Shown here piece by piece: positions 12,585 through 56,868 of a stretch of 64,000 nt of DNA; positions within the stretch are counted from its first letter, which is position 1, and each line of letters starts with the position of its first letter. Source of the DNA: Octopus bimaculoides (taxonomy: Eukaryota); assembly GCF_001194135.2 (NCBI RefSeq), contig NC_068982.1, positions 37,464,004 to 37,528,003 on the forward strand, written 5' to 3'. The translations under genes were made by a program, and so were the position numbers. The notes beneath the pieces are model-generated. The model did not search any database, was not told the DNA's origin, and was given only the letters and a program-made list of their open reading frames with translations.

Positions 12585-13079
12585 ATGCCACATGTTAATT
12601 GTTGTATCCCTTTCTGTTCTGCCGACTCTAAAAGACATGCAAGAATTCGTTTCTATAGTCTCCCTAAGGAAGAAACCCGTCGTGCTACTTGGGTTGCACT
12701 CATAAGAAACAGTAACTTACGTATCGATTCTAAGTACACAAGTGTTTGTAGTCTACATTTTCCCAATGGCAAAAAAACCCACGACAAAAAAGACCCTTCT
12801 TTTTTTCCTTGGTCACAGGAATGGCCTGTAATTATCAACAATTACAACATGATGCGAACCCAGTTGGGACTGGATAACATGTCGCCAGAACAACAACGTA
12901 AGAACCGGCCGATGACGCTAAGAATTCCTCCCATTTGTCCCTGGGCTAATAAATATATTAATGTGACATCGCAAAAAAGTTTGAATGAGTTGTTTTCTCC
13001 GAAGATTTTGCAATGTGACATCGACTTCGAAGATATCACTAAGGTCTCGACTAATCGGGATTTTCTCAATCAAATCGAA
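12585..13079 (+). CDS. First coding exon, THAP zinc-finger domain (C2CH); phase-0 donor
   Basis: MPHVNCCIPFC...FYSLP...RRATW...VCSLHF...PSFFPW has the THAP C-x4-C, P, W, CSxHF and P-x2-F signature. A at -3 of the ATG; donor GAA|GTGAGT with GT at 13080; 165 codons. Confidence 0.92.
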
Positions 13080-13819
13080 GTGAGTTCATCCAATTTTTAT
13101 CTCATTTAATTTTCTTCAGGCTATTATTTATATACTACGGTCACTTGACACACGTGTATGTATGTGTGTCGTTTATATTCTATTTATTTTCATATATAAA
13201 AATCATTGTTTCGCGTGTCTTGTTTCCCCAAATGAAACAAGAAGTGATTCCTTTAGTAAACTTCAACATGCATCAGTTTTGGAAACACCTGCGAATTTAT
13301 TAATTCATTTATTTTTCCATAACTAAAAACTTACGTATCGTTTTTTCTTTTCCTTTTCTTGAAAGTTTATTCTTGACGAAATATTCAACTTTTGCACAGA
13401 CTGTATACAGTATATTTAATTAACACTTGCTAAATGTTGACAATTTAACCACCAGTTTTTAGTCCTTCGAACTGTAGTAGCCAATGTAATCATAATTTTA
13501 TTATTATTTGTTTTGTTAATATTATACCCAATATTTTAGAAATATCTCTTTATTAAAATATGACAGTTAATCAATACAAACGTAAAATTTACAATACTGA
13601 AACATACAATATCGCCTCCTCGCTTCTCTCTGCTCGACCCCTTCTCGACTTCTCTCTCTCTCTCTCTCCTTTTCTTTGACATTCTTTCAGCTGGTTTTAT
13701 TTATTGAATGTTAGTATAAAGCTAGCAAAATATTTCATAAAATGTTGATTGCATTTTCTTATTTCGGTTTCATAAACTAAACCAAGTAGGTTGTAGTAGA
13801 TACATTACCATTATCGACA

Positions 13820-14170
13820 TGACTGTGTCGTTAAGTTCGCTTCGCAACCACGTAGTTGTGAGTTCAGTTCCACGGCGCGTCACCTTGGACATGTTTCTTC
13901 TCCTATAGTCCCGAGCCGACTAATTCCTTTTGAGTAAATTTGGTGGATGGAAATTGTGTGGGAGCTTGTCGTACACACATATATATATCTGTCTTCACCG
14001 CTTGACAACCGGTGCTGGTTTGTTTATGTCCCATAAGTTACCCGTTCGGCATAAGCGATTGACCAAATAAGTTTCTGACTTAAAAAAAAAAAGTGAGTAT
14101 TAGGGTTGATTTTTATCGACTAAAACCCTTCAAAGCGGTGCTCCAGCATGGCTGCAGTCACCTGATAAAC
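13820..14170 (+). mobile_element. SINE family A
   Basis: Head at about 13820 (tgactgtgtcgttaagttcgcttcgcaaccac); tail gcggtgctccagcatggctgcagtc. Confidence 0.85.
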
Positions 14171-14171
14171 A

Positions 14172-14208
<37 letters not shown>

Positions 14209-14995: not shown

Positions 14996-16190
14996 ATCAT
15001 CATCACCATCGTTTAACGTCCGTTTTCCATGCTGGCATTGGTTGGACGGTTTGACTGAGGTCTGGAGAGCCAGTAGCCGCACCAAGCTTCAGTCTGATCT
15101 GGCAATGTTTCTACAGCTGGATAACAACTCCAAGAGTGTAGTGGGTGCTTTTTACGTGCTACTGGCACAGGAGCCAGTCAGGCAGGCCTGGCTTCGATCA
15201 CGTTTGGACAGTGCTTTTTATGTGTCACTGGCACAGGGGCCAGTCAGTGGGTACTGGCATTGGCCACATTTGGATGGTGCTTTTTATGTGCCACTGGCAT
15301 GGGTGCCAGTCAGGGGGCACTGGTCACAGCTATGGTATTGGTTTTACTTGACTCAACAGGTCTTCTCATGCGTATCATATTTCAAGACGCATCAGGGTTA
15401 CTCTTAACAGGGCTGGACATGTGTGGCTGCGATCTCACTTTAGTTGCCGGGTCTTCTCAATCACAGTATATCTCCAAAGGTCTCGGTCTCCTGTCATTGC
15501 CCCTGTGAGGCCCAGTGTTTGAAGGTCATGCTTCACCACCTTCATGCTTCACTACTTCTTCCACATGTTCCTTCCACAGTTAGGGAGTGGCACTTCCTCA
15601 CGCAGCTGTCTTCATCCATACATAACACATGACCATACCAGCGCATCACATTTGATGCTTCTTATGTCCAACTTTTCTCTCAGGGTGCTTACACTCTGTC
15701 ATGTATGCACACTGACATTACACATCCAGCAAATCATACTAGCTTCATTTCTTTCAAGCCTATGCATGTTCTCAGCAGTCATGGCCCAAGTTTCACTGCC
15801 GTGTAGCATGACAGTTCACACACATGTATGATACAGTCTACCTTTCATCCTGAGCGAGAGGCCCTTAGTTGCCAGCAGAGGTAGGAGCTCCCTGAACTTT
15901 GCCCAGGCTAGTATTCTAGCCACTACATTCTCAGAGCAACCACCCCCACTACAGACTTGGTCACCTAGGTAGTGGAAGTTATTAAGTACTTCTAGTTTCT
16001 CCCCCTGGCATGTGATGGAATCTGTTTTCTGTACATCTTCAGTGTTTATTGCCCCTGTGCATCTGCCACACGCAAAAACTATTTTCCTTTGATATTGCTG
16101 CACCTTTTGTCTATAGCTTACACTGGGTACATCGTATGGAATTTCTACCTACGCCTTTTCTACAGATCGAGCAGGGACATCTACTTGGTT
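14996..16190 (-). mobile_element. RTE LINE, 5'-truncated, antisense in the THAP intron
   Basis: (CAT)n tail at about 15000, three ~65-bp 3'UTR units, and minus-strand WAKFRELLPLLATKGLSLRMKGRLY. Confidence 0.92.
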
Positions 16191-19197: not shown

Positions 19198-21470
19198 TAT
19201 CATCATCATCGTCGTCGTTTAACGTCCGCTTTCTATGCTGGCATGGGTTGGACAGTTTGACTGAGGACTGGCGAGCCAGAAGGCTGCACCAGGCTCCAAT
19301 CTGATCTTGCAAAGTTTCTACAGCTGGATGCACTTGCTAACACCTACCACTCTGAGAGTATAGTGGGTGCTTTTACGTGCCACCGGCATGAGGGCCAGTC
19401 AGGTGGTACTGACAGTGACCATGCTCAAAAGGTATTTTCTAAGTGCCACCTGCACGGGAGCCAGTCTGGCGACACTGGCAATGACCATGCTCAAATGTTA
19501 TTTTTCACGTGCCATCGACACATGTGCCAGTAAGGCGACACTGGCAATGATCACGCTCAAATGGTGCTTTTTATGTGCCACCGGCACGGGAGCCAGTCAG
19601 TGGCCCTGGCAACGATCATGCCCAGATGGTGCTTTTAATGGTGTTCCACTGGCATGAGTGCCAATCAGGCAGTACTGTTATTGGTCACGTCAGCGATTTT
19701 GATTTCACTTACCTCAACAGGTCTTCGCAAGCAAAGTTTATTGTCCAATGAATGAAGGGTACTCATAAGTGGGCTGGTTATACACCACTGGCATAGGCCA
19801 CAGGTTATGGTCACACTTGGTTTGCAGGGTCTTCTCAAGCACAGCATATCTCCAAAGGTCTCGGTCACTAGTCATTGCCTTGGTGAGGTCCAATGTTCAA
19901 AGGTCATGCTTCACCACCTCATCCCAGGTCTTCCTGTGTCTACCTCTTCCACAGGTTCCCTCAACTGCTAGGGTGTGACACTTTTTGCACACAGCTGTCC
20001 TCATCCATTCACAGCACATGACCATACCAGCGCAGTCGTCTCTTTTATACACCACATCTAATGCTTCTTAAGTCCAACTTTTCTCTCAGGACGCTTACAC
20101 TCTGTCTTGTATGCACACTGTATTACACATCCAGCGGAACATACTGGCTTCATTCCTTGCAAGCTTACGCATGTCCTCAGCAGTCACAGCCCGTGTTTCA
20201 CTGCCATGTAGCATAGCTGTTCGTACACATGCGTCATACAGTTTACCTTTTACTCTGAGCGAGAGACCCTTTGTCACTAACAGAGGTAGGAGCTCTCGGA
20301 ACTTAGCCCAAGCTATTCTTATTCTAACAGCTACACTTTCAGAGCATCCACCCCCACTACTGACTCGGTCATCTAGGTAATGGAAGCTATCAACTACTTG
20401 TAGTTTTTCTCCTTGGAATGTGACAGAAGCTGTTCTCTGCACATTTTCAGTGTTTATTGCTCCTGAGGTATTTGCCACGTACAAAAACTATCTTTCCAGT
20501 TAGCCTTCCTTTGATATTGCTGCACCTCTTATGTGTTCATAGCTTACACTGAGTACTTCTTATGGAGTTTCTAGCAACGCCTTTTCTACAGATTGAGCAG
20601 GGCCATCTACCTTAAGGGATTTGTGGTTTGTCTGCCTTCCTACTTATTAAGACTTTGGTTTTAACTAGGTTGACTCTAAGGCCCTTCAATTCTAATCCAT
20701 GCTTCCACACCTGAAACTTCTTTAGTTCTAATAGTGATTCAGCAATTAGAGCAAGGTCATCAGCATAGAGGAGCTCCCTGGGGCATCCTGTCTTGAATTC
20801 CTCTGTTATTGCCTGGAGGACTATGATGAATAAGAGGAGGCTGAGTACTGATCCTTGGTGGACCCTACCCCTACCCGGAATTCTTCACTATACCCGTTGC
20901 CAACCCTTGCCTTACTGACAGCATCCCTGTACATGGCTTGCACAGCTCCCACTAACCAATCATCTATCCCTAGTTTCCTTATTGACCTCCAGATAAGAGA
21001 TCAGGAGACCCTGTCAAAGGCTCTCTCCATGTCAATGAAAGCCAGGTACAGAGGTTTATCTTTGGCTAGGTATTTCTCCTGCAACTGTCTTACCAGAAAT
21101 ATAGCATCAGTGGTGCTTTTCCCTTGGTACAAACCCAAACTGCATCTCATCTAGGCTGACTCTCTCCCTAATTAGTTGGGTTATGACCCTCTCCGTGACT
21201 TTCATTACCTGATCCAACAACTTGATACCTCTGTAATTATTTGTATCTAATGCGTCACCTTTACCTTTGTAGCAGTTGGCTATGGTGCTGCTACACCAGT
21301 CATTGGGTATGACTCCTTCATGTATCACCTGGTTGACTATACAGGTGACTAGGCTATAGCTGACACTGCCAGATATTTTGAGCATCTCTGCAGTGATTCC
21401 TGATGGGCCAGGGACTTTCCTTGTCTTCATACCCTTAATTGCTTTATCTACCAAGGTAGTATGTATCAAT
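19198..21470 (-). mobile_element. RTE LINE, 2.3 kb, with decayed RT domain
   Basis: GPSGITAEMLK...NYRGIKLLDQVMKVTERV...QFGFVP (21107-21469); WAKFRELLPLLVTKGLSLRVKGKLYDACVR; about five 3'UTR units; (CAT)n tail. Confidence 0.95.
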
Positions 21471-24660: not shown

Positions 24661-25098
24661 NNNNNNNNNNNNNNNNNNNNNNNNNNNNNNNNNNNNNNNN
24701 NNNNNNNNNNNNNNNNNNNNNNNNNNNNNNNNNNNNNNNNNNNNNNNNNNNNNNNNNNNNNNNNNNNNNNNNNNNNNNNNNNNNNNNNNNNNNNNNNNNN
24801 NNNNNNNNNNNNNNNNNNNNNNNNNNNNNNNNNNNNNNNNNNNNNNNNNNNNNNNNNNNNNNNNNNNNNNNNNNNNNNNNNNNNNNNNNNNNNNNNNNNN
24901 NNNNNNNNNNNNNNNNNNNNNNNNNNNNNNNNNNNNNNNNNNNNNNNNNNNNNNNNNNNNNNNNNNNNNNNNNNNNNNNNNNNAACAACCCACATAAACA
25001 CTAACATCTGTATCACTCTTAACCTTACACTGATACAGTGTAAGGTTAAGAGTGATACAGATGTTAGTGTTTATGTGGGTTGTTCTTCGGATAAGATT

Positions 25099-28220: not shown

Positions 28221-28591
28221 AAACTATAGTGTTTGACTCGAGCTCAAAAATGAAAAAAAATTAGTGTAATAGGTGTAAAACAAATTGCTGGGAACGAATA
28301 TGAAAAAAAATGCGCTCTTGCGAACGAGGAGGGGGCTTGAAACATTCTCATCCTGANNNNNNNNNNNNNNNNNNNNNNNNNNNNNNNNNNNNNNNNNNNN
28401 NNNNNNNNNNNNNNNNNNNNNNNNNNNNNNNNNNNNNNNNNNNNNNNNNNNNNNNNNNNNNNNNNNNNNNNNNNNNNNNNNNNNNNNNNNNNNNNNNNNN
28501 NNNNNNNNNNNTATTCGTTCCCAGCAAGTTGTTTTACACCTATTACACTAGTTTTTTTTCGTTTTTGAGCTCGGGTCAAACGCTTTAGTTT
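28221..28591. mobile_element. MITE-like element with ~80-bp terminal inverted repeats (gapped centre)
   Basis: gtttgactcgagctcaaaaatgaaaaaaaattagtgtaataggtgtaaaacaaattgctgggaacgaata is inverted at 28512-28591 with a few mismatches. Confidence 0.8.
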
Positions 28592-32174: not shown

Positions 32175-32575
32175 GTTGATTGTCAGGTAATCAAACAAGA
32201 ACCACTCTCTGAAAGAAATCTTCCATTATTTGGGACTAAAACTGATATATCATCGAATTTAATTGATAAATTACCCTCAGATGTTAATGACAACTCTGGC
32301 CAGCTAATCATTCCTGCAGATTTGCAATCTCACATTAACTCTGAGAATTTAACCACTCACTTTAATCTACCTGATATTACAAATTATTTTAGTCAAACTT
32401 CTTCATTAAATGATTGCATCCTAGCACAACCCACTGTTTACAACCAATCTACCATGCTTAATAATGCACAGATTCCAAGAATACAGTCTAGGCTTTCACA
32501 CATGACTGTAGATGCCCAACAAAATATGGAACTTCAAAACCAAATACAAAGACAGAACAAAAGATCCTTATATGG
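32175..32575 (+). CDS. Internal coding exon (phase 0 to phase 2), low-complexity S/N/Q-rich linker; predicted exon 2 of the THAP module
   Basis: Acceptor cttttcctttccag|GTT; open frame VDCQVIKQEPLSERNLP...QNQIQRQNKRSLY(G), 133 codons plus 2 nt; donor TATGG|GTAAGT. The start phase matches THAP exon 1. Confidence 0.8.
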
Positions 32576-35500
32576 GTAAGTTAACTCTTCTAGCTCTTAG
32601 TTTATGTTCTTTCAAAGTAGAAGAAAGGCTTTGGAAAAATACTCAACTCAAACTTTCATCAAATTCTAATAAAGACTTGTCAGTTGGCTGTATGTCTATC
32701 CTGTTGACATCTAAGAGCCTCCTTTCGAACACTTTTTGAAGTGGTGGATGAATAACATAGGGGATATTTTTCAAGTCTGGATTCATTAATACAGAAAACT
32801 TTCATGATTACAGATCTCCTTGGACTGGGGCTCGTTTTAATCAAGGAGTCTACTGCATATTGACTTTATCAACTATTTTACATTGTTATCACCTTATTAA
32901 TGGACATAAAACATATCAGTGAAATCTGGATTGAAATCTAGAATTGAAACCACTGCTTCTACTGTGAAGTTTGCTGTCTTACTGACTAGCTTGTACAACT
33001 GCCATTTAAGAGTTTCTAAACTGGAAATTATTTTATACACTATAAGGTTTGTTTTTATGAATTTTTAATTTTATATTGGATTATTTTATGTCAATAAATA
33101 AATTTCTCATAAAATTGCTGAACAACCAAAGGACAATTCATTTATCATCTTGAATAATATATAATTATTTAATAATCATTGATAGATCACCACACATCTT
33201 CATGGTCTACTGCTTCACTACTAACATTTTTTATACACTGGACAAGACTAATTGTTACTTTGTTGTTTGTGTTTAGCTCATTTCTGTGCATCTTCTCTCA
33301 ATTGTATCAAGTGTACATTAAAAAAAAATTTTTAATTATTGTAACCACTAGTTGGCTATAATTCAGAGTGATCAATAAAAGTCTATGTTTTTTATTTATA
33401 TTTTCATCTGGAAATAGAAATAGATGTCACTTATCTCTTAATTCTTGTAGATATTTATTTGATTCAGATAGATGGCCCTCTCAATGTTAAGCACTCACCA
33501 TTTGACTATACAATCAGAATGGTAACTAATTCTTCAAATATCTTAAGTGAAACAAAGTGAAGTGAATAACAGTTGAGCAATGTTTCTCTCCTAAAAGAAG
33601 ATTAAAATACTTATGATAGGCTTTGAACCTATAATTTGTAGGTTTGTAGAATATTATGTATGATGAAACTGAAATATTTTGTTCATATATTTTACTAAGT
33701 AAAAATTTCTGCAAGTACAGTCATCATCTTGCTGATTAACCCCATCGTCAGGTGTCAGGTCTAATCAAGCAAACCTATTATGACAAAAACGATTCCAGCC
33801 TTGAATGCCTAGTCCCTTTTTTTTTTTGTCTTTTCAATGCAGCCTTTCTTTTTCTTTTTTCTTTTTTTTTTCAGGCAATAGGATGAGATTTGATTACTGT
33901 TTTTGATTACATTGATTGATCATATAGAAGTTCTTTTGTTGGTTTGTTGGTCATCTTGTTTATATATGTGATGATTAAATCTGCTGAATATCTGAGTTTA
34001 CCCAAAACTATTTCACTCATTTGGAACTGAAATGAATATCTTTTAAGTCAATATAAAATATTGAAACAAAGTAAAAAAAAAAATAATGATACACATCAAG
34101 AAGAACTATTTCAATATCAATCTAATATTTTAGTGATAAAGCATTTGTTATATTTTAGAAGTTTGAGTTATACTATAGGAAAAAGGGCATGTTGCTTGTA
34201 TATGTGATGAGAATAATTGTTTCAGATTAATGTGATGAAAATAATAAGAGTAATAAATTGGATAAAAATGTTTTTGTTAACATATTGTAGCTGATATAGA
34301 ATTAATTGTAAAAAATATTTAAGAATGTAATAGCTACAGTTTACAAAAATGAACAAAAATAGGAAATAAATTATTAAGTGATGTATAGTATTTAAATAAT
34401 GTAAAAATAAACACATTTTGATTGTCAGTGTTGAGAATTTTCAACATCCCACAGATGTCTGAACTGGAAGAGTAAACTGCAACAATCCAGATTGGTCCTC
34501 TTTATAATTGTAGTTGTCATAATGCTCATTTCAGTATTGGATTCCTGACTAATTGGTTCATCATTAATGTCTAATTTCCATATTTGCTTTTACTACCTTA
34601 ATGTTCTGCTACATACATTATCTTCATGCCATGCAATGCATTTGGAAATGTTGAGATTACAAATGTATCCTCTTTATGTTTATCTAGTTAGATAGGAGGT
34701 AGCCACAAAACAATTGCAATTAGAACCTTGAAAAATGTTCAAATTTAATCCATTACACGACTGATAAAAGTATTAAAAATAGATTAAAAAAAAATAATAG
34801 TAATAATAAAAAGTGTGGAAAAAATGAAATATATGTTATTTATTGTTGACTCTAATTAAATGGATTGTACATTTTAAAGGCATTTAAAATAGAAGAATTA
34901 TGTATATAATTTTGTTTTATATTCTAATGTATGAATACGTATGAATATATTTACCTTGTTGAAACATGTTCCATAGAATATGTTATTTAAGCTAAATGTA
35001 ATATAATTATATAAAATTTAGATAATGCATTTCTTGGCTTGTTATGAATTCATCTGATAAATTTAGAACACTTCTGATATTGATTGCTTCTATTGATCTT
35101 TTAAAAGCTACTCGAGGTTTGGTGCTAGTTATTCATTAATTATTTTATATGCATTTTTTTCTTCATCTCTTTGAATTCCCAAACAGAAGCTATTATAAAA
35201 CTCCAGATATGCTTAGTCAACTGCTAGTTAATTATATTGTATATTTAGCTCTAGTCCAGTGTACAGTTAATTAGATTAGAAGACAAATCTAGCTACTTAC
35301 AAGCTTTCTTTGTGTTCTTTGCCCCTTCTTCCTCCATTGCCAATTACTTCAAATATTCCAACTCATTTTCAGAAGATTATTTCATTCTGTAGTTAAAATT
35401 TAACATTTAAAATTATTTCTGTTCTGTGTTTCTTTATTTGCATATATATTTATCTAAAACCTACATCTACCATACTATTACAATCCAACAATACTAATAG

Positions 35501-39221: not shown

Positions 39222-39231
39222 NNNNNNNNNN

Positions 39232-39689: not shown

Positions 39690-40115
39690 AACAGTTACAA
39701 GTCGAGCGAACTGCTTTCTATTGCTGTATTATTGCTTGTTTTGCAGGACCGATAGCCAGCTAGCAAGCTAACTGACAGCAGCGGGTCTGGTTTATAATCA
39801 GCTATTATTAGATTGGCTGGTCGACTTCTACCACGTACTACTACCCAGTCTTAAACAATTTATGTAACTTCTGTCGAAAATCTATCTATCCAAATTATCC
39901 TCAACTGTAACAGATCTTTGTAAATTATATTTTGAAAACGATTCAGCGTTTGTGTATCTTTGTAATTCTTTTGCTGGAAAAAAATATATAGAAAAAAAAG
40001 ATACCTCTGAACCTGTACTATGGGAAATTTTCTGCACTATGAGAAAAAATCTATTTTATTGAATATGTATTAACTGTCGTTAGCCAACCTGACAAAGCCT
40101 CAACAAGATGGCGAC
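39690..40115 (+). promoter_or_regulatory. Candidate promoter/5'UTR of the recombinase-domain exon
   Basis: CpG-enriched patch at 39700-39860; YY1-type CAAGATGGCG overlapping the start codon (40104-40113); possible acceptor ttaactgtcgttag ending at 40083. Confidence 0.5.
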
Positions 40116-41652: not shown

Positions 41653-42324
41653 GCATAACTTTTACACGATCGTCCCCAGTCTCAAGATTTTTGTTATACA
41701 GAACAATTCTTATATTTTAAAACAAGTCTTTTAATTATGCACACACGCATACACCATACATGCAATAAACACACACACACATATAATGTTTGTATGTCAA
41801 ACCAAAATTATCGCACGTGTTTTCTACGATGGATTCGGGTTGACCAATGTCATGGAGTGGAGGTTGGTAGTCGGAAACTGCAGAGGTCCGTCCTGTGTGT
41901 GTGTGTGTGTGTGTAATGTAGTGTTTGTGTTTATGTACTAGTAATTCAGCCTTGTCACACGCTTATTTCGCTTGAGAAATACTTTAAAGATACATGTGTG
42001 TGTCTAATGTTTAGTGACTTTCACTCTAACAGTTGAATACACTTTGTTGCAACTGACATATATATGTACGTGTGTGGTGGTGCTTTCTTAGAAGGGGTTC
42101 AATGTTCACTTCTCGCTTGTATGTTTCACTTTGGGCCGGAGGAGTGGGGTACCTACCCTTCTTGTTACCAACCACTTTACAGAATGCATTGTGTGCGTTT
42201 TTCGGGGCATCAGAACTAACGACATTGGCATGTCCTCTTGACCCTCCGTTGTTTTGACTGGATGCATTTTATGATGGTACAGTTAGTTTGCTTCGTACCC
42301 TATAAGTACTCACTACGGCACTGT

Positions 42325-42452
42325 CATGGTATTAGCTGTCAGAAGTGAAAGTAGAAAAATCTGACAAGGAACGTTACTGCTGGTTTGAGTTGATTCTTTG
42401 GCTACTGACAGCTAATACCATGACTGGCCGGAGCGAGCTATCTGTCTGTCTG

Positions 42453-42509
<57 letters not shown>

Positions 42510-42944
42510 TTATCTATCACTCGAAAGTTATTGGAACAAATTCGACACCTATATCCATGCGTTTGAAAACACACAGAGTGGTCCCGAACGCGCAGTCGCG
42601 CGTCCGCGCTAGCTAGTCGTGAGTGGTCGATCCTATTATTTTTAAACTTCAAACTTCATTTGTTTTCTATTTTGATAAATTCTCTCTGTTGAAAATTATA
42701 TTTTTATATTTTAAATAATTTGCAATTTCAGAAAATATATTTTTATATTAAATTTGCGTTTTCTAATTTGATAAATTCTACGGACACAGGTGAACGAGTG
42801 ATAGATAGATAGATAGATATAGAGAGATAGTGAGATAGACAGACAGATAGATAGCTCCGGCTAGTCAGTAGCCAAAGAGTCAACTCAAACTAGCAGTAAC
42901 GTTCCTTGTCAGTTCTACTTTCACTTCTGACAGCTAATACCATG
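42325..42944. repeat. Long inverted repeat (arms of about 130 bp plus complementary CT/GA microsatellites) around a CpG-rich core
   Basis: catggtattagctgtcagaagtgaaagtagaa (42325-42356) is an exact reverse complement of 42913-42944; similarity continues through ctgacaaggaacgttactgct..tttgagttga..ctttggctactgac. Confidence 0.9.
42540..42618 (+). promoter_or_regulatory. Candidate non-coding alternative first exon and CpG-rich promoter for a BTB-only isoform
   Basis: Densest CpG cluster of the window (gaacgcgcagtcgcgcgtccgcgc), followed by a consensus donor GTC|GTGAGT (GT at 42619); the start coordinate is approximate. Confidence 0.5.
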
Positions 42945-43973: not shown

Positions 43974-44008
<35 letters not shown>

Positions 44009-47444: not shown

Positions 47445-47790
47445 ATCTTGTACTTGTTTCAGTCTTTGGACTATGGCCATGCTGGGGGTACTCCCTTGAA
47501 GGGTTTAGTCAAGCAAATCGACCCCAGTACTTATTTTAAGCCTGTTACTTATTCTGTTGACCCCTTTTTGCCAAACAGTCAAGTTATAGAAACATAAATA
47601 AACCAACACCAGTTGTCAAGCAGTGGTGGGGAACAAACAAAAACACAAAAGCACACACATGTGCAATAGGGTTCGTTCAGTTTCCATTTATGAAATCCAC
47701 TCACAAGGTTTTGGTCGGTCTGGAGTTATTGTGGAAGACACTTCCATAAGGTGCCACACAGTGGGATTGAACCCAAGACCTGCTACACCT
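47445..47790 (-). mobile_element. SINE family A, reverse
   Basis: tcttgtacttgtttcagtc...ggccatgctgg...gtgccacacagtgggattgaaccc. Confidence 0.85.
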
Positions 47791-48405: not shown

Positions 48406-48700
48406 TTGCAGCCATGATTCATCATCATTATTTAACACCTGGCATGGATTGGATGGTTTGACAGGATCTGACTAGCCTAAGAGCTGTATTGGTCTCCAAT
48501 GTCATTTGCAGTCATGATTCATGGTCTCCAATGTCATATTGCAGCCATGATTCATCATTATTTAACATGCTGGCATGGGTTGGATGGTTTGACAGGATCT
48601 GACTAGCCTGAGAGCTGCATTGGTCTCCAATGTCATCTTTGACAAGGTTTTTGTGACTGGATGCCCTTCCTAATACCAACCACTTTACAGAGTGCAATGC
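48406..48700 (-). mobile_element. RTE-type tail with a local ~100-bp tandem duplication
   Basis: 48406-48505 and 48538-48634 repeat attgcagccatgattcatc...ggtctccaatgtcat. Confidence 0.75.
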
Positions 48701-49827
48701 CTCATCTTTTGCATATCTAAGACTGCATTATCCAATGTATCTGGAAGCTACTTTTGTAGCAGGTTGAAACAACCAAATAGTCACCCTTTAGTTGTATAGG
48801 ATGTTCTGTGGGAGTCTTGGTCCAGTCTGTTATTTGTATATCTTTTATTGTTGTTTAACCCTAGGTCTGCTTTGACCAGGTAGATGTATCGTTGAAGGCA
48901 TTCCAACTATGACTATCCCACCTTTTTTCATACATAGTATAGCTAAGACTCTATTATCCAAATGTGTCATGTTTGTTAAGCTGATAAAGTATTTGTTGGA
49001 TATGTGGCTACTATTTCTAGCAGGTCAAGGAATTGTGTAGAGGTTTCCTATTAATCCAGTGTTTCTTGTTTCATGTTAGAGCCAGCATTTTAAAAGTTTC
49101 TTTTCTCATATAGAATTGAATTGTTTGTTAATGTGTGAATATAAAGAAATAAGTCAAATCCTTTGCTTCTATTGATAAGTTATATAGTGCCTGAAAGGAC
49201 TCTTTCATTGCAGAAGCCATCATGTATTCCTTGAATAAGATTTGTGAATTATTGTGGTTGAGTGAAGTTATCTGAATTCTTTTTGCAAGTTTCAAAGAGG
49301 AATATGTGAGTTGGTGATATCAAACATAAGTCCTTTTCAGGGATTTTGAAGGCATGTATGAGAGAGTGTTGAGTTCTTGTAATGCTGTTTTTTGGGGGGG
49401 GGTTTTGGTTGAATTTTTAATATAAATTTGCCCAGTTAACACATTCTTTGAATTTAGTATTGTTAGTAAGAGAACTTGATGCTTTGTTTGCTTGAACCCC
49501 ACTCTATCAAGCAGACTTCTTATCAAAGGTGTTCTAGACAAGATTATCCCATCATGTCTGTAGATATAATGTATCTAGAACTACTTTATCCAATGTATCC
49601 ATTTTGTTTATGATGGTATACTATTTTATGAGGGAGATATAGCAAGATGCATGACCTTACAGAAGCTTTTCTGTTCATTCATGATATAAGTTGAGTGCAG
49701 TGTGTTCTTCAAGCTCTTGGTATCTCTGGTGTATGCATGGGATTTTGTTGGGTCCTGAGGTTTTTGAGTTTATTGTGTATTTTCTATTTCTGTCTTTGTA
49801 TAACTTTTAGTTATTACTATTATTATT

Positions 49828-50045
49828 AAGGCAGCAAGCTGGTAGAATCGTTAGCGCACTGGACGAAATGCTTAGCAGTATTTTGCCCGTCACTACGTTC
49901 TGAATTCAAATTCTGCCAAGATCGACTTTACCTTTCATCCTTTCGAGGTCGATAGAATAAGTACCAGTTGAACACTGGGGTCAATGTAATCAGCTCATCC
50001 CCTTCCCCCAAATTGCTGCTCTCGGGAGCAAAATTTGAAACCATT
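49828..50045 (+). mobile_element. tRNA-derived SINE, family B, followed by an RTE tail (50048-50185)
   Basis: aaggcagcaagctggtagaatcgttagcgc...ttctgaattcaaattc...cctttcatcctttcgaggtcgatagaataagtaccag. Confidence 0.88.
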
Positions 50046-51067
50046 ATTGGCGTAAGGAAGGGCATCTAGCTGTAGAAACTTTGCCAGATCAGATTGAACC
50101 TGGTGCAGCCTTCTGGCTCACCAGTCCTCAGTCAAACCATCCAACCCATGCTAGCATAGAAAGCGGACGTTAAATGATGATGATGGTAATGATTATTTTT
50201 GTTTTTTTTTCTAAAGTGTTTGATAAGCAAGCTTGCTTGTTGGGGGTATGCATACGTAACTTAAAGCTGTTATGATGTGATATTGTGTAACTTACAGATT
50301 TTGCTAATTTGTGTCCTGTTTTACTGCTTGTTTTGTGATTTATCATAGATACATATTTTTAACAGCTTTCTTTTCTCTGGTTCATTTTCTATTTAGTTTC
50401 TCAATGAAATTTAATTCTGTTATGTATGGTATTAGTGTTTTGTTTAAGGTGGTTGTTCCTGGTTTTTTATCAGGCTGACTATGTCACTTGGGTAATTTGG
50501 ATTTTATATTTTTATGCATCTTTGTGGGATGAATGTATGGAATGAATTATCTATGTTTATGTATCATTGTGTCTTGCAATGTGATTGCCATTCTATTTTA
50601 AGGAATTTTCTGTCAGGTATGGGCAACCTATTTTGAGAAGCAGACTGCATGAGATGTTCATCATCAGGTGGGTCACACTACTAAAAAGACTGAAGGCAAT
50701 TTTTCATTTAGGTGTGCCATTCAGAAAGTCCTGTAGGCTGCAGTTTACCCATGACTACTCTATGATTACTTGACCTGGTAACAGCCTAATTTCTTCCAAA
50801 CTACATCCTATTGTCTTTAAAAGTGGGTTACCCTGGATAATACAATCATGGATTGTATTATCTACTGGAAAAAGAGATGGGTTGGTTTCAGCTGAAATAC
50901 CTTCAGAATGATGGTCATGAAAGTAAAACTTAGTTGTGCCCTTAAAAGTCTATGTATGTTCTAAAACTGTTATTTGGAATGGGTGTAATCTTTTTAGTTG
51001 TTACAATAACTAAATTAGGATGCGGCTAGTTTATTCTTTGCAAGCATTAGTTACATTATCATCATTG

Positions 51068-51510
51068 TGCTGTGCGTGAGAAGACCCGGCAAGCCAAGTA
51101 AGATCGTTGCCAGTGCCCCGGGACTGGCTCTTGTGCGGGTGGCACATAAGATGCACCATTTTGAGCATGGCCATTGCCAGTACCGCCTGACTGGCTTCCG
51201 TAGGATTTTCGAGCGAGATCGTTGCCAGTGCCCCTGGACTGGCTTGTGCGGGTGGCACATAAAAGACACCATTTTGAGCGTGGCCATTGCCAGTATCGCC
51301 TGACTGGCCTTCGTGCAGGAGACACGTAAAAGCACCTACTACACTCTCTGAGTGGTTGGCGTTAGGAAGGGCATCCAGCTGTAGAAACTCTGCCAAATTT
51401 AGATTGGAGCCTGGTGTTGCCATCCGGTTTCACCAGTCCTCAGTCAAGTCGTCCAACCCATGCTAGCATGGAAAGCGCACGTTAAACGATGATGATGATC
51501 ATCATCATCA
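51068..51510 (+). mobile_element. RTE 3' end (3'UTR units and tail)
   Basis: gctgtgcgtgagaagacccggcaagccaag ... gcatggaaagcgcacgttaaacgatgatgat; close to 10843-11427. Confidence 0.93.
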
Positions 51511-53405
51511 TCTCATTTAGGCAATTATACAGCTACTGGATAGTCTAGACAAAACTAATTAAATGTCAGGTCCTGGCATTTGTATGCCTTAATTACTGGA
51601 ATTAATAAATCTAGATTCAGGGTAATGTTAAGTGTCTGAAGTTGTTTTGTTGAGTTAAATAACTTTTTGTTTATTGAATTTGTGATAAGATTATTATAGA
51701 CAGATTGCAATAAACTTTGTGTTGATTGAAATGCAGGGTCCATTCAGAAAGGTGAATAAATGTTGTTTTAACCCCAGATTAACCCTGAATGAGTAGATAT
51801 CTATTCAAAGCTGTTCCATCTATGATCAACCTATTTTTATTCAGGCATAATGTATCTAAATCTACATTGACCTGTGTCTTTCCTCTTTTTAAGATGTGAG
51901 AGATTTCACTGTCATTTCTTGTAGGCTCAGCAACAAATGGTAGTGAACAATTTTAAAGCTGATCTAAGTTATTGAGACAGGTTTGACAGTATGTTTATTA
52001 GATTATTCAATAATTTTCTTCTGTAGTTTACTTATATAACATTTGTTTATCGTATTTTTTTTATTCACTTGCAAGATCTTTCATGTCCATGTATTTCTCA
52101 TTTTCAAAATTGAAACAGTTGCATAAGATAATTATAAATGATACTTAAGTAATCAGTTACTGTTACATAGCATTCGCAGAAATATGCAACCATGTTTTAC
52201 TTCTGTTGACATAACATTTAAAAGTGAAATCAAAGCATTTTATTTCATACATCATGAGCAGTATGGTCACTGCGAATCTATACATATTCTATCTATAAAA
52301 GTGAATGCAGTGTTTCTGTCTGGAATCCTAAGCTCTTACTTTATCTATTTCCCCCTATTTTTACTTGCTATTGGAGCAAGCTTTTGATTTATGGTAGCAT
52401 TATGTTGTAAAATATTGTTGACAGAATTTTATATTAAATGTAAATTTCACTATTCATGTATTATGTGCTTATATATGTGCATGCACACACACATCTATAT
52501 TTACTGTTATGTCTCAAGCTACTGCTATCTAGCACCTTTGGATGATCTCTACTCAACCACTACACAACTGCTACTCGACTTCTACTCAACACTCCTACCA
52601 TGGCCAGACTACCTCTATTTATATGTCTTGGGAGATCCTACTTCTTCGCCGGGGGGCATCGACACAACATTTACAGTTATACATATGTGTGTGTGTGTAT
52701 ATAAGTAAAAGAAAACATAGAAGTGATAGTTTCTTTATATAAAAGTCTTTGAATTTTCTTAAAGAAATGAGATGAAATATTACTTAAATTCTTTTAGTAT
52801 GTTTGTTTTGTCTAGCACTGGAGAGTCAGTTTCTGTTTTTATAACACACACATATGAGAGAGGAAGAGATTTCTGTGAATACATTTCATTAATGTTCTGT
52901 AACTTTAACATTTGTTTGAACATGGTATTGCTTTACACATTATATTATGTTTATTTATTTCTCTGTGACCTATACACCAGAAAAAGGTATGAAAGATGTT
53001 GTTCTGCTCTGGGCTGATAAAGTTTGGTAGAATGTAGCAGAATAATGTATGATATAATTGTCTTTGGTGTGATGATTTTCAAATAAGTGGCTTAGCACTC
53101 ATCTCATCTGAATTGTTTCTAAAGCTGGATAGATGAATAATGTTGCAATTGAGTTTTACTTCATGTTTTAAGCCTCTTCATTTTTATTTTGAGCATTTTG
53201 TGGTAGTTATTGTAAAAATGAGACCTGACTACAAAATAAGCTGGGTGAGGGTAACAGTTACTACCCTTCAGCTATGTTTGGTGCAAATATTTGTGACTAC
53301 TAAAATGTTGACAATTGAATTGCAATATTTTAGTTTATTTTTAATGTTTTTATCAATTTATATCCAATATCCATCGTATTATATTTCATTTCTCTTTATA
53401 TACAG

Positions 53406-53568
53406 TGAGCAGAATACGCCAACAACTTTTATGAAAACAGTTGAAAACCCTACTCATTCATATGTTGTGCACAAACATCAAGGCCACATGCTCTCCAATA
53501 TGGCCAATCTTTGGAAAAAAGGTAAACTCTGTGATGCTTCCATTGGAAATGGAACAATGAAAATTATG
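53406..53568 (+). CDS. BTB/POZ exon A (phase-2 acceptor, internal ATG at 53431, phase-0 donor)
   Basis: ttctctttatatacag|T GAG CAG AAT...ATG AAA; (x)EQNTPTTFMKTVENPTHSYVVHKHQGHMLSNMANLWKKGKLCDASIGNGTMKIM; donor ATG|GTAAGT. Confidence 0.9.
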
Positions 53569-53769
53569 GTAAGTATTAAATGTTAAATCATGATTATCTA
53601 ACTCTGTATCTATTCATGCACACTTGTTTTTTTTTTTATTATTTAAGTATTTCCCTTTAGTATGTTAAGATCAGCTGCTAATCCAAATCATGAGTACAGA
53701 CATTATAGCACATAACAATAAGTATTTTAAAGCCAAGTTTCCCTGCTAAATTAGGGATTAACTTTATGG

Positions 53770-54880
53770 TCCCACTGACAGTCTTCTTCATTATTAATAT
53801 GAGATAATAAATATGAGACAAATGACAGATCCTTTCAGGGTGAAGGCCCTGCTTGATATGTAGAAATGCTGTTGGAAGAAACTCCAAATGGTGTACTCAA
53901 TACAAGTTATGGACGCATAAGAGGTGCAGTGATATCACTGGGAAATTAACAGAGAAAGTAGTCTTTACATGTGGCTGATGTGCAAGTACACTAAACACTA
54001 GGAATGTTAAAAAAAATAGACTCCTTCAAATGTCAGGAGGTGATCCTTAGAAGTAGTTGACAGTTTCCGTTACTTAGGTGAGGTTGTTCTGAAAATATAG
54101 CTGCTAGAATAAGAATGCGCTGGGTAAAGTTCAGAGATCTGCTACCTCTGTTAGTAATGAAGGGTCTCTCTCTCAGAGTAAAAGGCAGATTGTATGATGC
54201 CTGTGTATGAACATTTATGCTACGTGGCTGTGAGACATGAGCTGTGACTATTGAGGACATGTGAAGGCATGAAAGAAATGAAGCCAGATGGGTAATGTCA
54301 GTGTGCATATACGACTGAGTATAAGTGATTTGAGAGAAAAACTGGGTATACAAGGCATCACATGTAGTGTCCAAGAGAGAAGACTGCATTGGTATGGTCA
54401 TGTAATGCTTATAAATGCAGGTAGATGCATCAAGAAATGCTGATCTCTTATTGTGAAGGGGTAGACCCAGGAAGACATGGGATAAAGTGGTGAAAAAGGA
54501 TCTTCAAACCTTGTGCCTCACTGAGGGACGACAGGGAACTGAGACTTCTGGTGATTTGCTGTGCTTGAGAAAACACATCAAGCTAAGTAAAATTGTGGTT
54601 GTCCTTGCATACAGGCATGACCTCTGCATCCCTTTTCAGCTGAGTGATCCTAATCTTGCGGGCTCATGGGTGCTGGTGCCACATAAAAAGCACCTATGCC
54701 AGTACCATGTAAAAGCACCCAGTACACTCTGTGAAATGGTTGGCATTAGAAAGGGCATCCAGCTGTAGAAACCATACCACAACAGACATGGAGCTTGGGC
54801 AGCTCTTCAGCTGGCTAGCAACTGTTAAACCATCCAACCCATTGCCAGCAAAGAAAACAGATGTTAAAAGATGATGATAA
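53770..54880 (+). mobile_element. Decayed RTE in the BTB intron
   Basis: Degenerate PHD-like region, ARIR..WVKFRDLLPLLV.KGLSLRVKGRLYDACV, and the tail gcattagaaagggcatccagctgtag. Confidence 0.88.
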
Positions 54881-55887
54881 TATATCATATTGATACTTTG
54901 TAACATTGGAGTCCACAATGTGAAGTGGGTAAAAGAAAAATTAAATGTAATGAAAGCAATCAAAATTTAAAAATTGAAATTGATAATAATATTATTATTT
55001 TAAATCACTTGCATTTGCCAAACAAGCCAGTGAATTGTTTTCAGTGTAATCAACAACGGATTTGTTTGAAATTATGAATAGTGTTTATGATATCTGAAAT
55101 CCCATGGGCTCTTTGACTGGTTAAGAAAAAAAGAAAAAGAAAGGTAACTAAAACTAAACCATGTAAACAAAGAGACAACTATGTATGTGTATATATTATC
55201 ATTGTTTTAATGTCCACTTTTCCATGCTTTCATGGGTCAGACAGAGTTTATTGAGGTAGATTTTCTATGGCCAGATATCCTTCTTGCTGCCAACCCTTAC
55301 CTGTTTCTAAGCTTGGTAATATTTCACCACAGCCAGACATGTTTCCACAGAATATTGAAAATAAAGGACATTCAATTACAGCAATCACGCAACGTCATGA
55401 CATGAAGACACAAGTTTACACACATATGAAGACACAAGTTTACACACATATACATGTGTATGTAACATGCATGCACATACGTACATACATAAATACATAA
55501 TTTTTATTATTTTTTGTGAGACAGATTCTCAACATACCTTGTATTAGAAGTATATAAAGTCCTATGTTTCTAGCCTATGTAAATTAAGAGCAAGTATCTG
55601 AAGACATGTAATATTGTGATTATTCATGATCATGCATTATTTATTGGAATACAAAGGATTATTCATCTCCTCTTTTCTTCCTTAATTCTAAAATAGTTTC
55701 CTAATTTCCTAAGTCAATAATGTGTTAATGTTTCCAATGAAAGAAATGTGTTATGTCTCTGTACACAAAATATATTTTTAAATGATTTTTTTTGGAGGGG
55801 GGGGGGTTCAGTTAGGCTTTTAATGTGATTCTTTGAAATATTCTGCTTTTATTGTTTTTCTATAAATATGTGTTCTTTCTTTTCTAG

Positions 55888-56868
55888 GTTCACAAAGTTG
55901 TGTTGATTGCTCTTAGCCCACAACTTTTAACATTGCCAAATGCCACCGTAACATCGGGTTGTTTCCAGTTGACATTTTCTCAGGATATTGGTGGTGATGC
56001 TTTATGGGCATTTGCTAAATATATGTACGAAGGTGTTGTCTCCCTTAATGAGGAGGTATTAGAGGATATGGAGCATATTGCGAAAATCCTTGGTTTAAGT
56101 GATCTATTAGATATGTGTAAACTTTATCGGAAGCAGGTTTTGAGTTCTATTGACAATCCTGTCACAACTAAGGCCTTAATCTCTCAATCAACTGAATCTC
56201 CAGGCATTATAAGGGATGCCATTTCAACAGAGATTGTTAATACAATGGATACAATGCCTAAAACTGATGGCCCATCTTTATCAACTGGTGTATCTTTCGT
56301 GGGTCTACCCAATAGTGATATTACTCCATCAATCTCGAAACCAGTGCAACAGTTACAGAACTTAGCTACAGAATCAATGACAAATCAAATACAATTCCAA
56401 ACAAAACAATCAGTTCCTCCGGTGATCCTTTATTCAGCTGATAAAGACTCTTCAGTTTCAAGCTATGCCAATGATTCTGTAGGATTAAAACAAGAACCAT
56501 CAAGTCCCTTGAAAAAAAGGTGCAGTAAAAAAGATTTCTTATCTTCTTTTCCTTCAAGACACTCAGACACACATATTGTTGTCCACGATGATTTATCAGA
56601 ACCTTGGCAACCACATTCTTACTGTGATAATGAAGACCCAAAAAGTCCTCCACCTCCAAAGCGTCTAAAATCTTCAGAACTACCTGAAGACTCTTTATCT
56701 AATTTATCTCACTCAAATACTGAAGATTTCAGTCCTCACACTAAAAGTGCCAAAGACTCTTATCCTATCAAAATTGAACTTGAACGAGACTGTAACAGTG
56801 ATTTAGAAACTTCTGGGATTCCTTATGTTGTGTCGTTAATTCAAGCCAAAGGCCTGGACACGACTTGA
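55888..56868 (+). CDS. BTB/POZ exon B (rest of BTB plus S/P/T-rich tail); terminal coding exon
   Basis: ttctttcttttctag|GTT CAC AAA: VHKVVLIALSPQL...FAKYMYEGVVSL...IAKILGLSDLLDMC completes a ZBTB/KLHL-type BTB. The tail has LKQE, IKIE and PPPPKRLK; TGA at 56866-56868. With ATG 53431 the protein is 372 aa. Confidence 0.93.
   Translation, partial: VHKVVLIALSPQLLTLPNATVTSGCFQLTFSQDIGGDALWAFAKYMYEGVVSLNEEVLEDMEHIAKILGLSDLLDMCKLYRKQVLSSIDNPVTTKALISQSTESPGIIRDAISTEIVNTMDTMPKTDGPSLSTGVSFVGLPNSDITPSISKPVQQLQNLATESMTNQIQFQTKQSVPPVILYSADKDSSVSSYANDSVGLKQEPSSPLKKRCSKKDFLSSFPSRHSDTHIVVHDDLSEPWQPHSYCDNEDPKSPPPPKRLKSSELPEDSLSNLSHSNTEDFSPHTKSAKDSYPIKIELERDCNSDLETSGIPYVVSLIQAKGLDTT

Follow-up and report, generated by a model that had tools for sequence, protein, structure and literature searches.

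A probable coleoid gene with alternative THAP and Crypton-derived heads on one shared BTB tail

The closest precedent for the locus described here is isoform b of vertebrate KCTD1, in which a Crypton DUF3504 exon is combined with a BTB domain. The Crypton-derived DUF3504 domain lies in one exon 5' of the BTB gene, giving a long form that has DUF3504 at the N terminus and BTB at the C terminus, alongside another isoform, and the captured domain is ancient and catalytically dead (Kojima & Jurka 2011, PMC3212892). 'Transposase capture' likewise yields host-transposase fusion genes through alternative splicing, an example being KRABINER (Cosby et al., bioRxiv 10.1101/2020.05.07.082677). The combination of THAP and BTB has been noted in Octopus as a domain architecture in a study that regards BTB as transposon-derived (Mukherjee & Moroz 2023, PMC10027918).

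We analysed a 64,000-nt stretch of the Octopus bimaculoides genome (the window), for which an earlier note had proposed that either a THAP-linker module or a tyrosine-recombinase module is spliced onto a single BTB module. On re-reading, the exon coordinates, the sequences, both GTAAG donors and the acceptor are exactly as predicted. The predicted exons and associated features are as follows (slashes mark splice boundaries).

12585..13079, + strand: THAP exon 1, 495 nt, residues 1-165; donor GAA/GTGAGT, phase 0
32175..32575, + strand: linker exon, 401 nt; acceptor TTTCCAG/G, phase-2 donor TATGG/GTAAGT
39747..39770, + strand: alternative acceptor (TTTTGCAG/GACC) of the withdrawn RefSeq model XP_014776314
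40108..41648, + strand: recombinase module, a single coding exon of 1541 nt; phase-2 donor TTCAC/GTAAGC
53406..53568, + strand: BTB exon A, 163 nt; phase-2 acceptor TATACAG/T, donor ATG/GTAAGT, phase 0
55888..56868, + strand: BTB exon B, 981 nt with the stop; remainder of the BTB domain and a 240-aa tail
57509..58045, + strand: probable 3' UTR block, 3' of the stop; 72% identity to Argonauta, colinear

Joining THAP exon 1 and the linker to BTB exons A and B gives an in-frame protein of 679 aa, and joining the recombinase exon to the same BTB exons gives an in-frame protein of 894 aa; common to both are 380 C-terminal residues beginning at the predicted junction. The products and junctions set out in the earlier note (SLYG-EQNTP and NSFT-EQNTP) are thereby reproduced, and its phase-2 donors at 32575 and 41648 and phase-2 acceptor at 53406 are all as it read them. 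Pfam matches are to THAP (9.8e-11), DUF3504 (4.5e-7, passing its cut-off) and BTB (9.3e-10). The apparent TAA stops are indeed part of the donors at both sites, and the one in the linker donor terminates a 299-aa THAP-only reading. However, such a TAA is automatic in any phase-2 GTAAG donor and is therefore not a special design.

Both forms are already in the NCBI RefSeq gene annotation. The predicted 894-aa product is the same at every residue as O. bimaculoides RefSeq XP_014776313. In O. sinensis the two lengths belong to isoforms of a single gene, LOC115230799 (X1, 894 aa; X2, 679 aa), with 380 identical C-terminal residues from EQNTP, which follow ..CANSFT in the longer form and ..KRSLYG in the shorter. 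These XP_ models are computational predictions; they match the core of the proposal, that either head is spliced onto one BTB. The linker-BTB junction of X2 recurs in Argonauta protein P0001 and cuttlefish protein P0005, whose annotations connect the linker to the BTB exons independently. The locus had been expected to be annotated as three genes, but RefSeq splits it into two in O. bimaculoides, with THAP as a separate 299-aa model ending at the donor TAA, and has one gene with both isoforms in O. sinensis. The older model XP_014776314 (306 aa) joins the linker donor to the acceptor at 39747 instead of the BTB, which appends ..G-TDSQLAS-stop. We found no assembled transcripts across the 32575-53406 or 41648-53406 junctions; the contigs recovered for the locus are all colinear with genomic DNA. 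Cephalopods have further recombinase-BTB paralogues, one of which was recovered as spliced mRNA contigs with the same phase-0 intron within the BTB and a phase-2 acceptor. A literature search found no mention of the locus identifiers in any paper. The earlier note knew of no description, but Crypton-BTB in KCTD1 (PMC3212892) and THAP with BTB in octopus (PMC10027918) are both on record.

O. vulgaris, Argonauta and cuttlefish all have the order THAP exon 1, linker, recombinase, BTB exon A, BTB exon B. The two donors and the acceptor, together with their phases, are preserved in O. vulgaris, in Argonauta hians and in a cuttlefish, Acanthosepion pharaonis, and a second decapodiform contig has the recombinase and both BTB exons with the recombinase donor and the acceptor kept; donor position and phase, which the earlier note had suggested comparing among cephalopods, are thus conserved. 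Indels are tolerated in frame, the linker measuring 401 nt (392 nt in Argonauta) and the recombinase exon 1541 or 1559 nt, all 2 mod 3. Because donors, acceptor and phases are kept across species despite these indels, the pattern, as judged from sequence comparison, exceeds chance. The THAP domain, recombinase core and BTB domain have dN/dS ratios of 0.09, 0.05 and 0.04, respectively, a range (0.04-0.09) that indicates strong purifying selection on all three; those of the linker, BTB tail and recombinase tail are 0.20, 0.17 and 0.31. THAP exon 1, which encodes a C2CH THAP zinc finger and the beginning of the linker, is present in O. vulgaris, Argonauta and cuttlefish, and about 230 nt 5' of its ATG can also be aligned with Argonauta.

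At the other end of the locus, BTB exon A is open from its first base solely in phase 2, with stops in the other two frames. Its in-frame octopus Met is Arg in decapodiforms, and of the changes 5' of this Met between Octopus and Argonauta, 3/4 are synonymous. With a non-conserved Met and a single open phase, exon A requires an upstream coding exon. We regard it as likely that the locus is a single gene, conserved across coleoid cephalopods, whose two 5' coding modules exclude each other and whose 3' part is shared.

The recombinase exon comprises a Crypton-derived DUF3504 core (residues 1-345) and a variable tail. An AlphaFold model of this head (pLDDT 83) gives Foldseek matches to QRICH1 and Cre at a TM of about 0.6; the best is QRICH1 in 9hjt (Zincore complex on DNA), with 16% identity in the alignment, and QRICH1 is also the best solved relative in a profile search with the domain (E = 2.5e-8). 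All coleoids have Leu, before an invariant Gly, in place of the likely box-I (first catalytic) Arg, and octopods have also lost the catalytic Tyr, which in them is Phe and adjoins an 8-residue deletion; His-x-x-Arg is retained in the octopus head. The designation 'tyrosine recombinase' in the earlier note thus describes the fold, which is kept, but not the catalytic residues. Sequence and model together indicate a domesticated Crypton (DUF3504) with a two-domain Cre-like fold that has lost catalytic residues. The exon is single-copy and syntenic, its nearest non-orthologue being about 35% identical, and its donor is identical in six sources. The NCxFxF motif at the natural C terminus of its relatives aligns with ..SCANSFT, immediately 5' of the donor.

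The introns contain conserved blocks, an insertion and three assembly gaps.

24661..24983, no strand: assembly gap 1, THAP-to-linker intron, within simple-repeat sequence; flanks abut in O. vulgaris
28357..28511, no strand: assembly gap 2, THAP-to-linker intron, in TE-rich 25703-28596
34995..35145, no strand: conserved non-coding element in the linker-to-recombinase intron
39222..39231, no strand: assembly gap 3, between linker and recombinase ORF, adjoining an (AT)n run
39791..39833, + strand: conserved non-coding block (TTTATAATCAGCTATTATTAGATTGGCTGG...), about 280 nt 5' of the recombinase ATG, with TATAA and ATTGG (reverse CCAAT)
40017..40073, + strand: conserved 5' leader block, 92% identity to cuttlefish across 62 nt
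42317..42944, no strand: MITE-like insertion of 628 bp, with terminal inverted repeats of about 170 bp (self-BLAST)

The block at 39791..39833 is near-invariant from octopus to cuttlefish, whereas the adjoining introns cannot be aligned even with Argonauta, and it is a candidate core promoter of the recombinase module. The leader block contains two tiny uORFs, ATGAGAAAAAATCTATTTTATTGA at 40039-40062 and ATGTATTAA at 40065-40073. The element at 34995..35145 matches Argonauta by BLAST (83% over 216 nt, with a near-invariant core) and lacks an ORF, a match in Rfam and a stable fold (z = +1.07). On both sides of gaps 1 and 3 the sequence is colinear with the gap-free O. vulgaris locus, and gap 3 is also in GCA_001194135.2; the 2.9-kb stretch around gap 2 cannot be aligned with O. 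vulgaris, with colinear anchors on either side. By sequence comparison all three gaps are intronic and conceal no coding exon, since the four-exon protein is as long as O. sinensis X2 and differs from it at 9 of 679 residues.

The same locus could be read as three unconnected genes, one for THAP (299 aa), one for the recombinase (514 aa) and one for the BTB, with accidental donor-like ORF ends and fused RefSeq models that are read-through artefacts. The solitary 299-aa THAP model in O. bimaculoides RefSeq, the 513-560-aa recombinase ORFs that ORF callers return on genomic contigs and the lack of a junction-crossing assembled transcript among the contigs recovered for the locus would all fit. 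We nevertheless consider this very unlikely: exon A follows a strong acceptor and has an open frame in phase 2 alone, with a Met that is Arg in decapodiforms and mainly synonymous changes 5' of it; donor position and phase survive indels across the coleoids sampled; fusions of a head with the BTB appear in four separate annotations; and a paralogue occurs as spliced recombinase-BTB mRNA. An active Crypton transposon merely located in an intron is almost certainly the wrong reading of the recombinase ORF. Its DUF3504/phage-integrase signature and long intact ORF are those of such an element, but it has the same position in six sources, close paralogues were not found, its dN/dS is 0.05, Leu replaces the likely box-I Arg and octopods lack the Tyr.

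The recombinase exon might instead serve mainly as an internal cassette or 'poison' exon in transcripts from the THAP promoter (32575 to 39747), its inclusion stopping the THAP reading after seven codons, so that exon skipping and not promoter choice sets the isoform. XP_014776314 (..SLYG-TDSQLAS) has precisely this join, and the 39747 acceptor has a good pyrimidine tract and an AG kept in three Octopus species. However, that AG is lost in Argonauta (CAC), the site cannot be aligned in cuttlefish, the model is superseded in the current annotation and the conserved TATA-like block lies 3' of the acceptor; moreover, strong purifying selection acts on the recombinase core, which therefore must be translated. 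We regard this role as unlikely; it could coexist with the two-headed gene. A third, BTB-only isoform of 372 aa whose non-coding first exon would lie at 42.6 kb, also raised in the earlier note, appears highly improbable. A GC-rich patch followed by a GTGAGT donor at 42619 and an in-frame ATG in exon A suggested it, but exon and donor lie within the MITE-like insertion, which is absent at the orthologous O. vulgaris site, the Met is not conserved (Arg in decapodiforms) and the 372-aa product is in no annotation.

Like KCTD1, the two-headed octopus gene has a Crypton DUF3504 exon before a BTB, an alternative isoform and lost catalytic residues. Its alternative isoform has a THAP head, in contrast to the BTB-only alternative of KCTD1, and it keeps His-x-x-Arg, whereas vertebrate Crypton genes lost the second Arg. 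The octopus BTB is of the classical PF00651 type (ZBTB/KLHL; best solved relatives KLHL3, ZBTB17 and gigaxonin), presumably not of the KCTD type, which argues for independent capture. Drosophila mod(mdg4) and lola have a constant N-terminal BTB and tens of alternative C-terminal exons, and mod(mdg4) also trans-splices. These loci share with the octopus gene a constant BTB and alternative DNA-binding modules at one locus, but the octopus BTB is C-terminal, with two heads and exons that are all colinear on one strand; it is probably an alternative-first-exon gene rather than the 'mirror image' that had been suggested. Clustered protocadherins and UGT1A splice arrays of paralogous first exons to constant exons. 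They resemble the octopus gene in placing alternative 5' exons, presumably with a promoter apiece, upstream of constant exons, whereas the octopus modules are two, unrelated, and one has two exons. ZMYM2/3/4 and QRICH1 are domesticated Crypton genes too, and their DUF3504 likewise has the recombinase fold and has lost catalysis, but it is not N-terminal and their partner regions are zinc fingers or CARD; the octopus partner is BTB. As in transposase capture, splicing joins a transposon ORF in or near a host gene to exons of the host, fusing it with a regulatory domain. KRABINER has an N-terminal host KRAB and a C-terminal transposase, whereas in octopus the element-derived domain is N-terminal with a donor at the end of its own ORF, and two unrelated element-derived heads share one host tail. 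The octopus element is a tyrosine-recombinase Crypton, and Cryptons are unmentioned in Cosby et al. (10.1101/2020.05.07.082677). The octopus locus, its splicing and its alternative recombinase head are not described in PMC10027918.

We propose that a Crypton ORF came into an intron of a THAP-BTB gene, probably in that order, before the octopod/decapodiform split, and would have gained a 5' splice site a few codons from its natural C terminus. Transcripts from THAP exon 1 would join exon 1 to the linker and, skipping the recombinase exon, to BTB exon A, giving the 679-aa THAP-BTB protein. Transcripts that start just 5' of the recombinase ORF, with the conserved TATA-like block near 39.8 kb as the probable site, would use the TAA-overlapping donor and the same acceptor to give the 894-aa DUF3504-BTB protein. 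Both isoforms are presumably used in O. bimaculoides. The shared tail carries putative nuclear localization signals (basic patches KKRCSKK and PPPPKRLK) and SUMO-type motifs (LKQE and IKIE). The two heads would confer different targeting: THAP is a sequence-specific zinc finger, and the recombinase head would most likely act as a DNA or protein clamp, by likeness to the related QRICH1 DUF3504, which acts on DNA-bound zinc-finger factors. The shared BTB dimerization domain would permit both homodimers and mixed dimers.

Two alternative heads, one a THAP exon followed by a linker exon and the other a recombinase open reading frame (ORF), are predicted to be spliced onto a common tail encoded by BTB exons A and B. 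Re-examination of the window sequence shows that all of the coordinates proposed in the earlier note are correct and that both of the joins it predicted are in frame, yielding a THAP-linker-BTB product of 679 aa and a recombinase-BTB product of 894 aa. The underlying observation is confirmed, and its interpretation as two alternative heads on one BTB is correct.

Coding exons of the locus (a slash marks the splice site)
12585-13079, + strand, THAP exon 1, donor GAA/GTGAGT
32175-32575, + strand, linker exon, donor TATGG/GTAAGT
40108-41648, + strand, recombinase ORF, donor TTCAC/GTAAGC
53406-53568, + strand, BTB exon A, with a strong acceptor in front
55888-56868, + strand, BTB exon B

The linker and the recombinase ORF each appear to end in a TAA that lies within the splice donor. 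This TAA is present as claimed, but it is not a special design, because any phase-2 GTAAG donor automatically contains it, and this is why ORF callers see 'complete' ORFs.

Existing gene models contain the same junctions. RefSeq XP_014776313 (LOC106873459) is identical to the predicted 894-aa product, and THAP is represented in the O. bimaculoides RefSeq as a separate 299-aa gene, LOC106873460. The O. sinensis gene LOC115230799 is a single gene with an 894-aa isoform X1 and a 679-aa isoform X2, which have exactly 380 C-terminal residues in common from EQNTP onward, preceded by ..CANSFT in X1 and ..KRSLYG in X2. The junctions postulated from the window are those of these two isoforms. The linker-BTB join is also annotated in Argonauta hians and in cuttlefish. 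For annotation, the practical point is that the locus is two genes in the O. bimaculoides RefSeq and one two-isoform gene in O. sinensis. Protein searches returned no Logan-derived protein with a head joined to the BTB of the locus; where Logan contigs contain the recombinase ORF, they follow the genomic sequence straight through the introns and are uninformative on splicing.

The window is chromosome sequence of Octopus bimaculoides and agrees base for base with GCA_001194135.2, including a 10-N gap. The three assembly gaps within the span of the locus (24661-24983, 28357-28511 and 39222-39231) are all intronic, so the reading frame across them is irrelevant. The flanks of gap 24661-24983, which lies within simple-repeat sequence, and of gap 39222-39231, which adjoins an (AT)n run, are colinear in the gap-free O. 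vulgaris locus. Gap 28357-28511 lies within 2.9 kb of TE-rich sequence that is unalignable to O. vulgaris, with colinear anchors on either side. Because the four-exon protein matches its O. sinensis counterpart in length and differs from it at 9 of 679 residues, we conclude from this sequence comparison that no coding exon can be hidden in the gaps. Comparison with Argonauta revealed no further conserved module between 10 and 60 kb of the window. The introns are filled, in both orientations, by repeated fragments of one retroelement family that include ORF remnants (for example, ..RLRWYGHV..RGRGRPRKTW..), and Mariner-like transposase fragments also occur.

Mobile-element fragments in the window
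5774-6253, 10393-10875, 15816-16103, 20095-20484, 26994-27455 and 54033-54768, both strands, retroelement fragments
8079-8480, + strand, Mariner-like transposase fragment
45639-45950, - strand, Mariner-like transposase fragment

O. vulgaris, Argonauta and Acanthosepion pharaonis all have their exons in the sequence THAP1, linker, recombinase, BTB-A, BTB-B, and a second decapodiform contig contains the recombinase and both BTB exons. As this exon order is common to octopods and cuttlefish, the arrangement is older than the octopod/decapodiform split. Conservation of donor position and phase, proposed as a check in the earlier note, was found for both donors and the acceptor in other cephalopods. 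Exon lengths vary (from 401 to 392 nt and from 1541 to 1559 nt) and are always 2 mod 3, and phase 2 is the only open frame of BTB exon A in every species compared. Comparing O. bimaculoides with Argonauta gives dN/dS values of 0.04 in the BTB, 0.05 in the recombinase core and 0.09 in THAP; the linkers and tails have values of 0.15-0.31.

The THAP head matches the THAP zinc-finger domain (PF05485) at 42.7 bits in Pfam (cut-off 23.9 bits). This domain is defined by C-X2-4-C-X35-53-C-X2-H zinc ligands, conserved Trp and Pro residues and a C-terminal AVPTIF-like box; by eye, the corresponding features are C7..C11...C55-x2-H58, W36 and a ..DPSFFPW box, all of which are retained in cuttlefish. The tail matches BTB/POZ (PF00651) at 39.1 bits (cut-off 20.5 bits), and solved relatives of the domain are KLHL3, ZBTB17, gigaxonin and ZBTB18. 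Judged by its sequence, the BTB is of the classical ZBTB/KLHL type and is predicted to dimerize. NLS-like basic patches and SUMO-type motifs are present in the tail. Downstream of the BTB stop codon, positions 57509-58045 are 72% identical to Argonauta and colinear, and probably constitute the 3' UTR.

The second head matches DUF3504, the Crypton-derived tyrosine-recombinase family, at 30.5 bits in Pfam (cut-off 29.7 bits), and has profile matches to QRICH1 (2.5e-8) and XerA (2e-4). Its AlphaFold model (pLDDT 83) shows a full two-domain Cre-like fold; structure comparison places it closest to QRICH1, as seen on DNA in the Zincore complex, and to Cre (TM 0.56-0.62 over ~340 columns). As modelled, this head belongs to the Crypton-derived DUF3504/tyrosine-recombinase fold. 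The R-H-R-Y tetrad is not intact: H304 and R307 (His-x-x-Arg) are retained, and changes fall at the likely first Arg and, in octopods, at the Tyr. Every coleoid sequence has Leu immediately before an invariant Gly, a position at which 6/6 aligned Crypton-like relatives have Arg; alignment suggests that this site is likely to be the box-I catalytic Arg. The catalytic Tyr is kept in decapodiforms and is a Phe adjoining an 8-residue deletion in octopods. A single syntenic copy is present per species. With an incomplete tetrad and no multiple copies, the head is predicted to be neither an active tyrosine recombinase nor an autonomous Crypton. Apart from orthologues, its closest relatives are Crypton-like and only ~35% identical or less, which indicates that the recombinase is an old single-copy gene. 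The natural C-terminal NCxFxF motif of these relatives aligns with ..SCANSFT, directly 5' of the donor; thus, capture took in essentially the entire Crypton ORF, and the splice site formed where that ORF ended.

The introns flanking the exons are unalignable even to Argonauta, and non-coding features stand out locally.

Non-coding features of the locus
34995-35145, AT-rich conserved non-coding element in the linker-to-recombinase intron, 83% over 216 nt versus Argonauta
39791-39833, block with TATAA and ATTGG (reverse CCAAT) upstream of the recombinase ATG, near-invariant from octopus to cuttlefish
40017-40073, leader block 5' of the recombinase ATG, with two very short uORFs (MRKNLFY-stop, MY-stop), near-invariant from octopus to cuttlefish
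42317-42944, MITE-like insertion of 628 bp with ~170-bp terminal inverted repeats, absent at the O. vulgaris site

The two conserved blocks upstream of the recombinase ATG fit a recombinase head with a putative promoter and leader of its own. The element at 34995-35145 has a near-invariant core within intron that is otherwise unalignable to Argonauta. It contains neither an ORF nor a stable fold that would mark it as an RNA gene, and an Rfam search of 32-42 kb gave nothing above threshold, with sub-threshold low-complexity miRNA matches only. A role as an enhancer or in the control of splicing is possible.

Other products could be envisaged from the same exons. An older, 306-aa model of LOC106873460 splices from the linker donor into position 39747, a short way 5' of the recombinase ORF. 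This acceptor is Octopus-specific, its AG having been lost in Argonauta. It may mark a minor cassette-exon route, which we retain as a rival reading. Stand-alone THAP or recombinase proteins could be made by intronic polyadenylation, and AATAAA/ATTAAA hexamers do occur 93 and 116 nt past the two donors; neither hexamer is conserved in position, and both are what AT-rich DNA would yield by chance, leaving this route unsupported. The BTB-only isoform put forward in the earlier note is not supported by comparison among species. Its proposed 42.6-kb first exon sits inside the species-specific MITE-like insertion at 42317-42944, which is missing in O. vulgaris, and its start Met is an Arg in decapodiforms.

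Several known systems invite comparison. In mod(mdg4) and lola, a constant N-terminal BTB is combined with many alternative C-terminal DNA-binding exons, with trans-splicing in mod(mdg4). The analogy with these genes drawn in the earlier note stands only loosely, and the locus is not of their type: its BTB is C-terminal, it has two heads and all of its exons are colinear on the + strand. In clustered protocadherins and UGT1A, the first exons are paralogues arranged in tandem, and every one of them is served by a separate promoter; the locus differs from this type in that its heads are two and unrelated. The closest precedent is vertebrate KCTD1, in which an upstream Crypton insertion gave rise to isoform b, whose N-terminus is a DUF3504 encoded by one exon and whose C-terminus is a BTB (PMC3212892). 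The locus likewise has a single-exon DUF3504 upstream of the BTB that gives the long isoform. However, its BTB gives only PF00651 in Pfam, and no KCTD chain is found among its solved relatives. Because the BTB subfamily differs, the octopus case is convergent and lies outside the KCTD1 family. In frames and gene models, an element-derived and a host domain are joined across an intron in one ORF, making this a predicted host-transposase fusion gene; such genes generally arise when alternative splicing captures a transposase (bioRxiv 10.1101/2020.05.07.082677). Octopus THAP proteins carrying BTB have already been noted (PMC10027918), and a literature search found no paper naming the locus or its protein identifiers. 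Public annotation already contained the gene models, and the principle is an established one. What is particular to the locus is the presence of two unrelated mobile-element-derived heads on one BTB tail, conserved across coleoids.

An exhaustive profile search identified further recombinase-BTB proteins: P0051 (paralogue B), LOC106879774 / LOC115220336 (paralogue C) and P0052. P0051 is the 926-aa product of a decapodiform gene and is found on many 4-kb Logan contigs from numerous sequencing runs (L021-L024). When mapped to the cuttlefish genome (L025), these contigs skip three introns of ~9.5, 4.7 and 1.9 kb and so represent spliced mRNA; among the contigs recovered, spliced recombinase-BTB mRNA comes from this paralogue only. 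The P0051 BTB has the same phase-0 intron (..IVM/VHK..) as the locus, as well as a phase-2 acceptor, and is 47% identical to the BTB of the locus. Its recombinase shares 56% identity with an oyster Crypton-like protein but only 31% with that of the locus. The P0051 recombinase retains Arg-Arg-Gly, His-x-x-Arg and Tyr. The second Octopus recombinase-BTB gene (P0065 / P0208; O. sinensis LOC115220336, O. bimaculoides LOC106879774) lies on another chromosome and encodes 894-897 aa, with several annotated isoforms. A fourth lineage (P0052 / P0218 / P0220; 614-862 aa) comes from Logan contigs of ~3.2 kb, and its BTB matches the family profile at ~1e-28. In a neighbour-joining tree, used as a rough guide, the recombinases of the four lineages do not group. 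These sequences hint at repeated captures by related BTB genes.

In Argonauta hians, two tandem paralogues of 705 and 697 aa lie downstream of the orthologue (L010, 10001-17445 and 21857-26553). Both still have the tail of the recombinase, with the same phase-2 donor (GTAAGCATAA), and each has BTB exons of its own; the recombinase core is replaced by a different head with, by eye, a BED-like Cys/His pattern. The Pfam matches of this head are sub-threshold (Zn_ribbon_IS1595, E 0.026; HTH_28, 0.12); a homology search was empty, no solved relative was found and NCBIfam gave nothing useful. No counterpart of these paralogues was found within 7-10 kb downstream in Octopus.

A speculative reading, to which we give rather little credence, is that the locus is the most compact case of a cephalopod BTB family that has been a repeated landing site for mobile elements, with mixed dimers forming between isoforms and paralogues. 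An ancestral BTB exon with a phase-2 acceptor, as seen in the locus and in P0051, would have received foreign heads. Its partners would have been Crypton recombinases from different Crypton lineages and THAP, with a zinc-ribbon/HTH-like head added in Argonauta. Mixed BTB dimers of isoforms and paralogues would then combine different targeting heads. If this were so, the family would genuinely do at the N-terminus what lola and mod(mdg4) do at the C-terminus.

The locus is a clean and very old example of mobile-element proteins turned into host regulators, in which a whole Crypton ORF became an alternative first coding exon by means of a donor site located where the ORF itself stops. The separate origin in KCTD1 of a Crypton DUF3504 before a BTB suggests that function favours coupling a dead recombinase to a BTB. 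For cephalopod biologists, the locus offers a defined isoform pair with which to test the part played by a dead recombinase domain in gene regulation.
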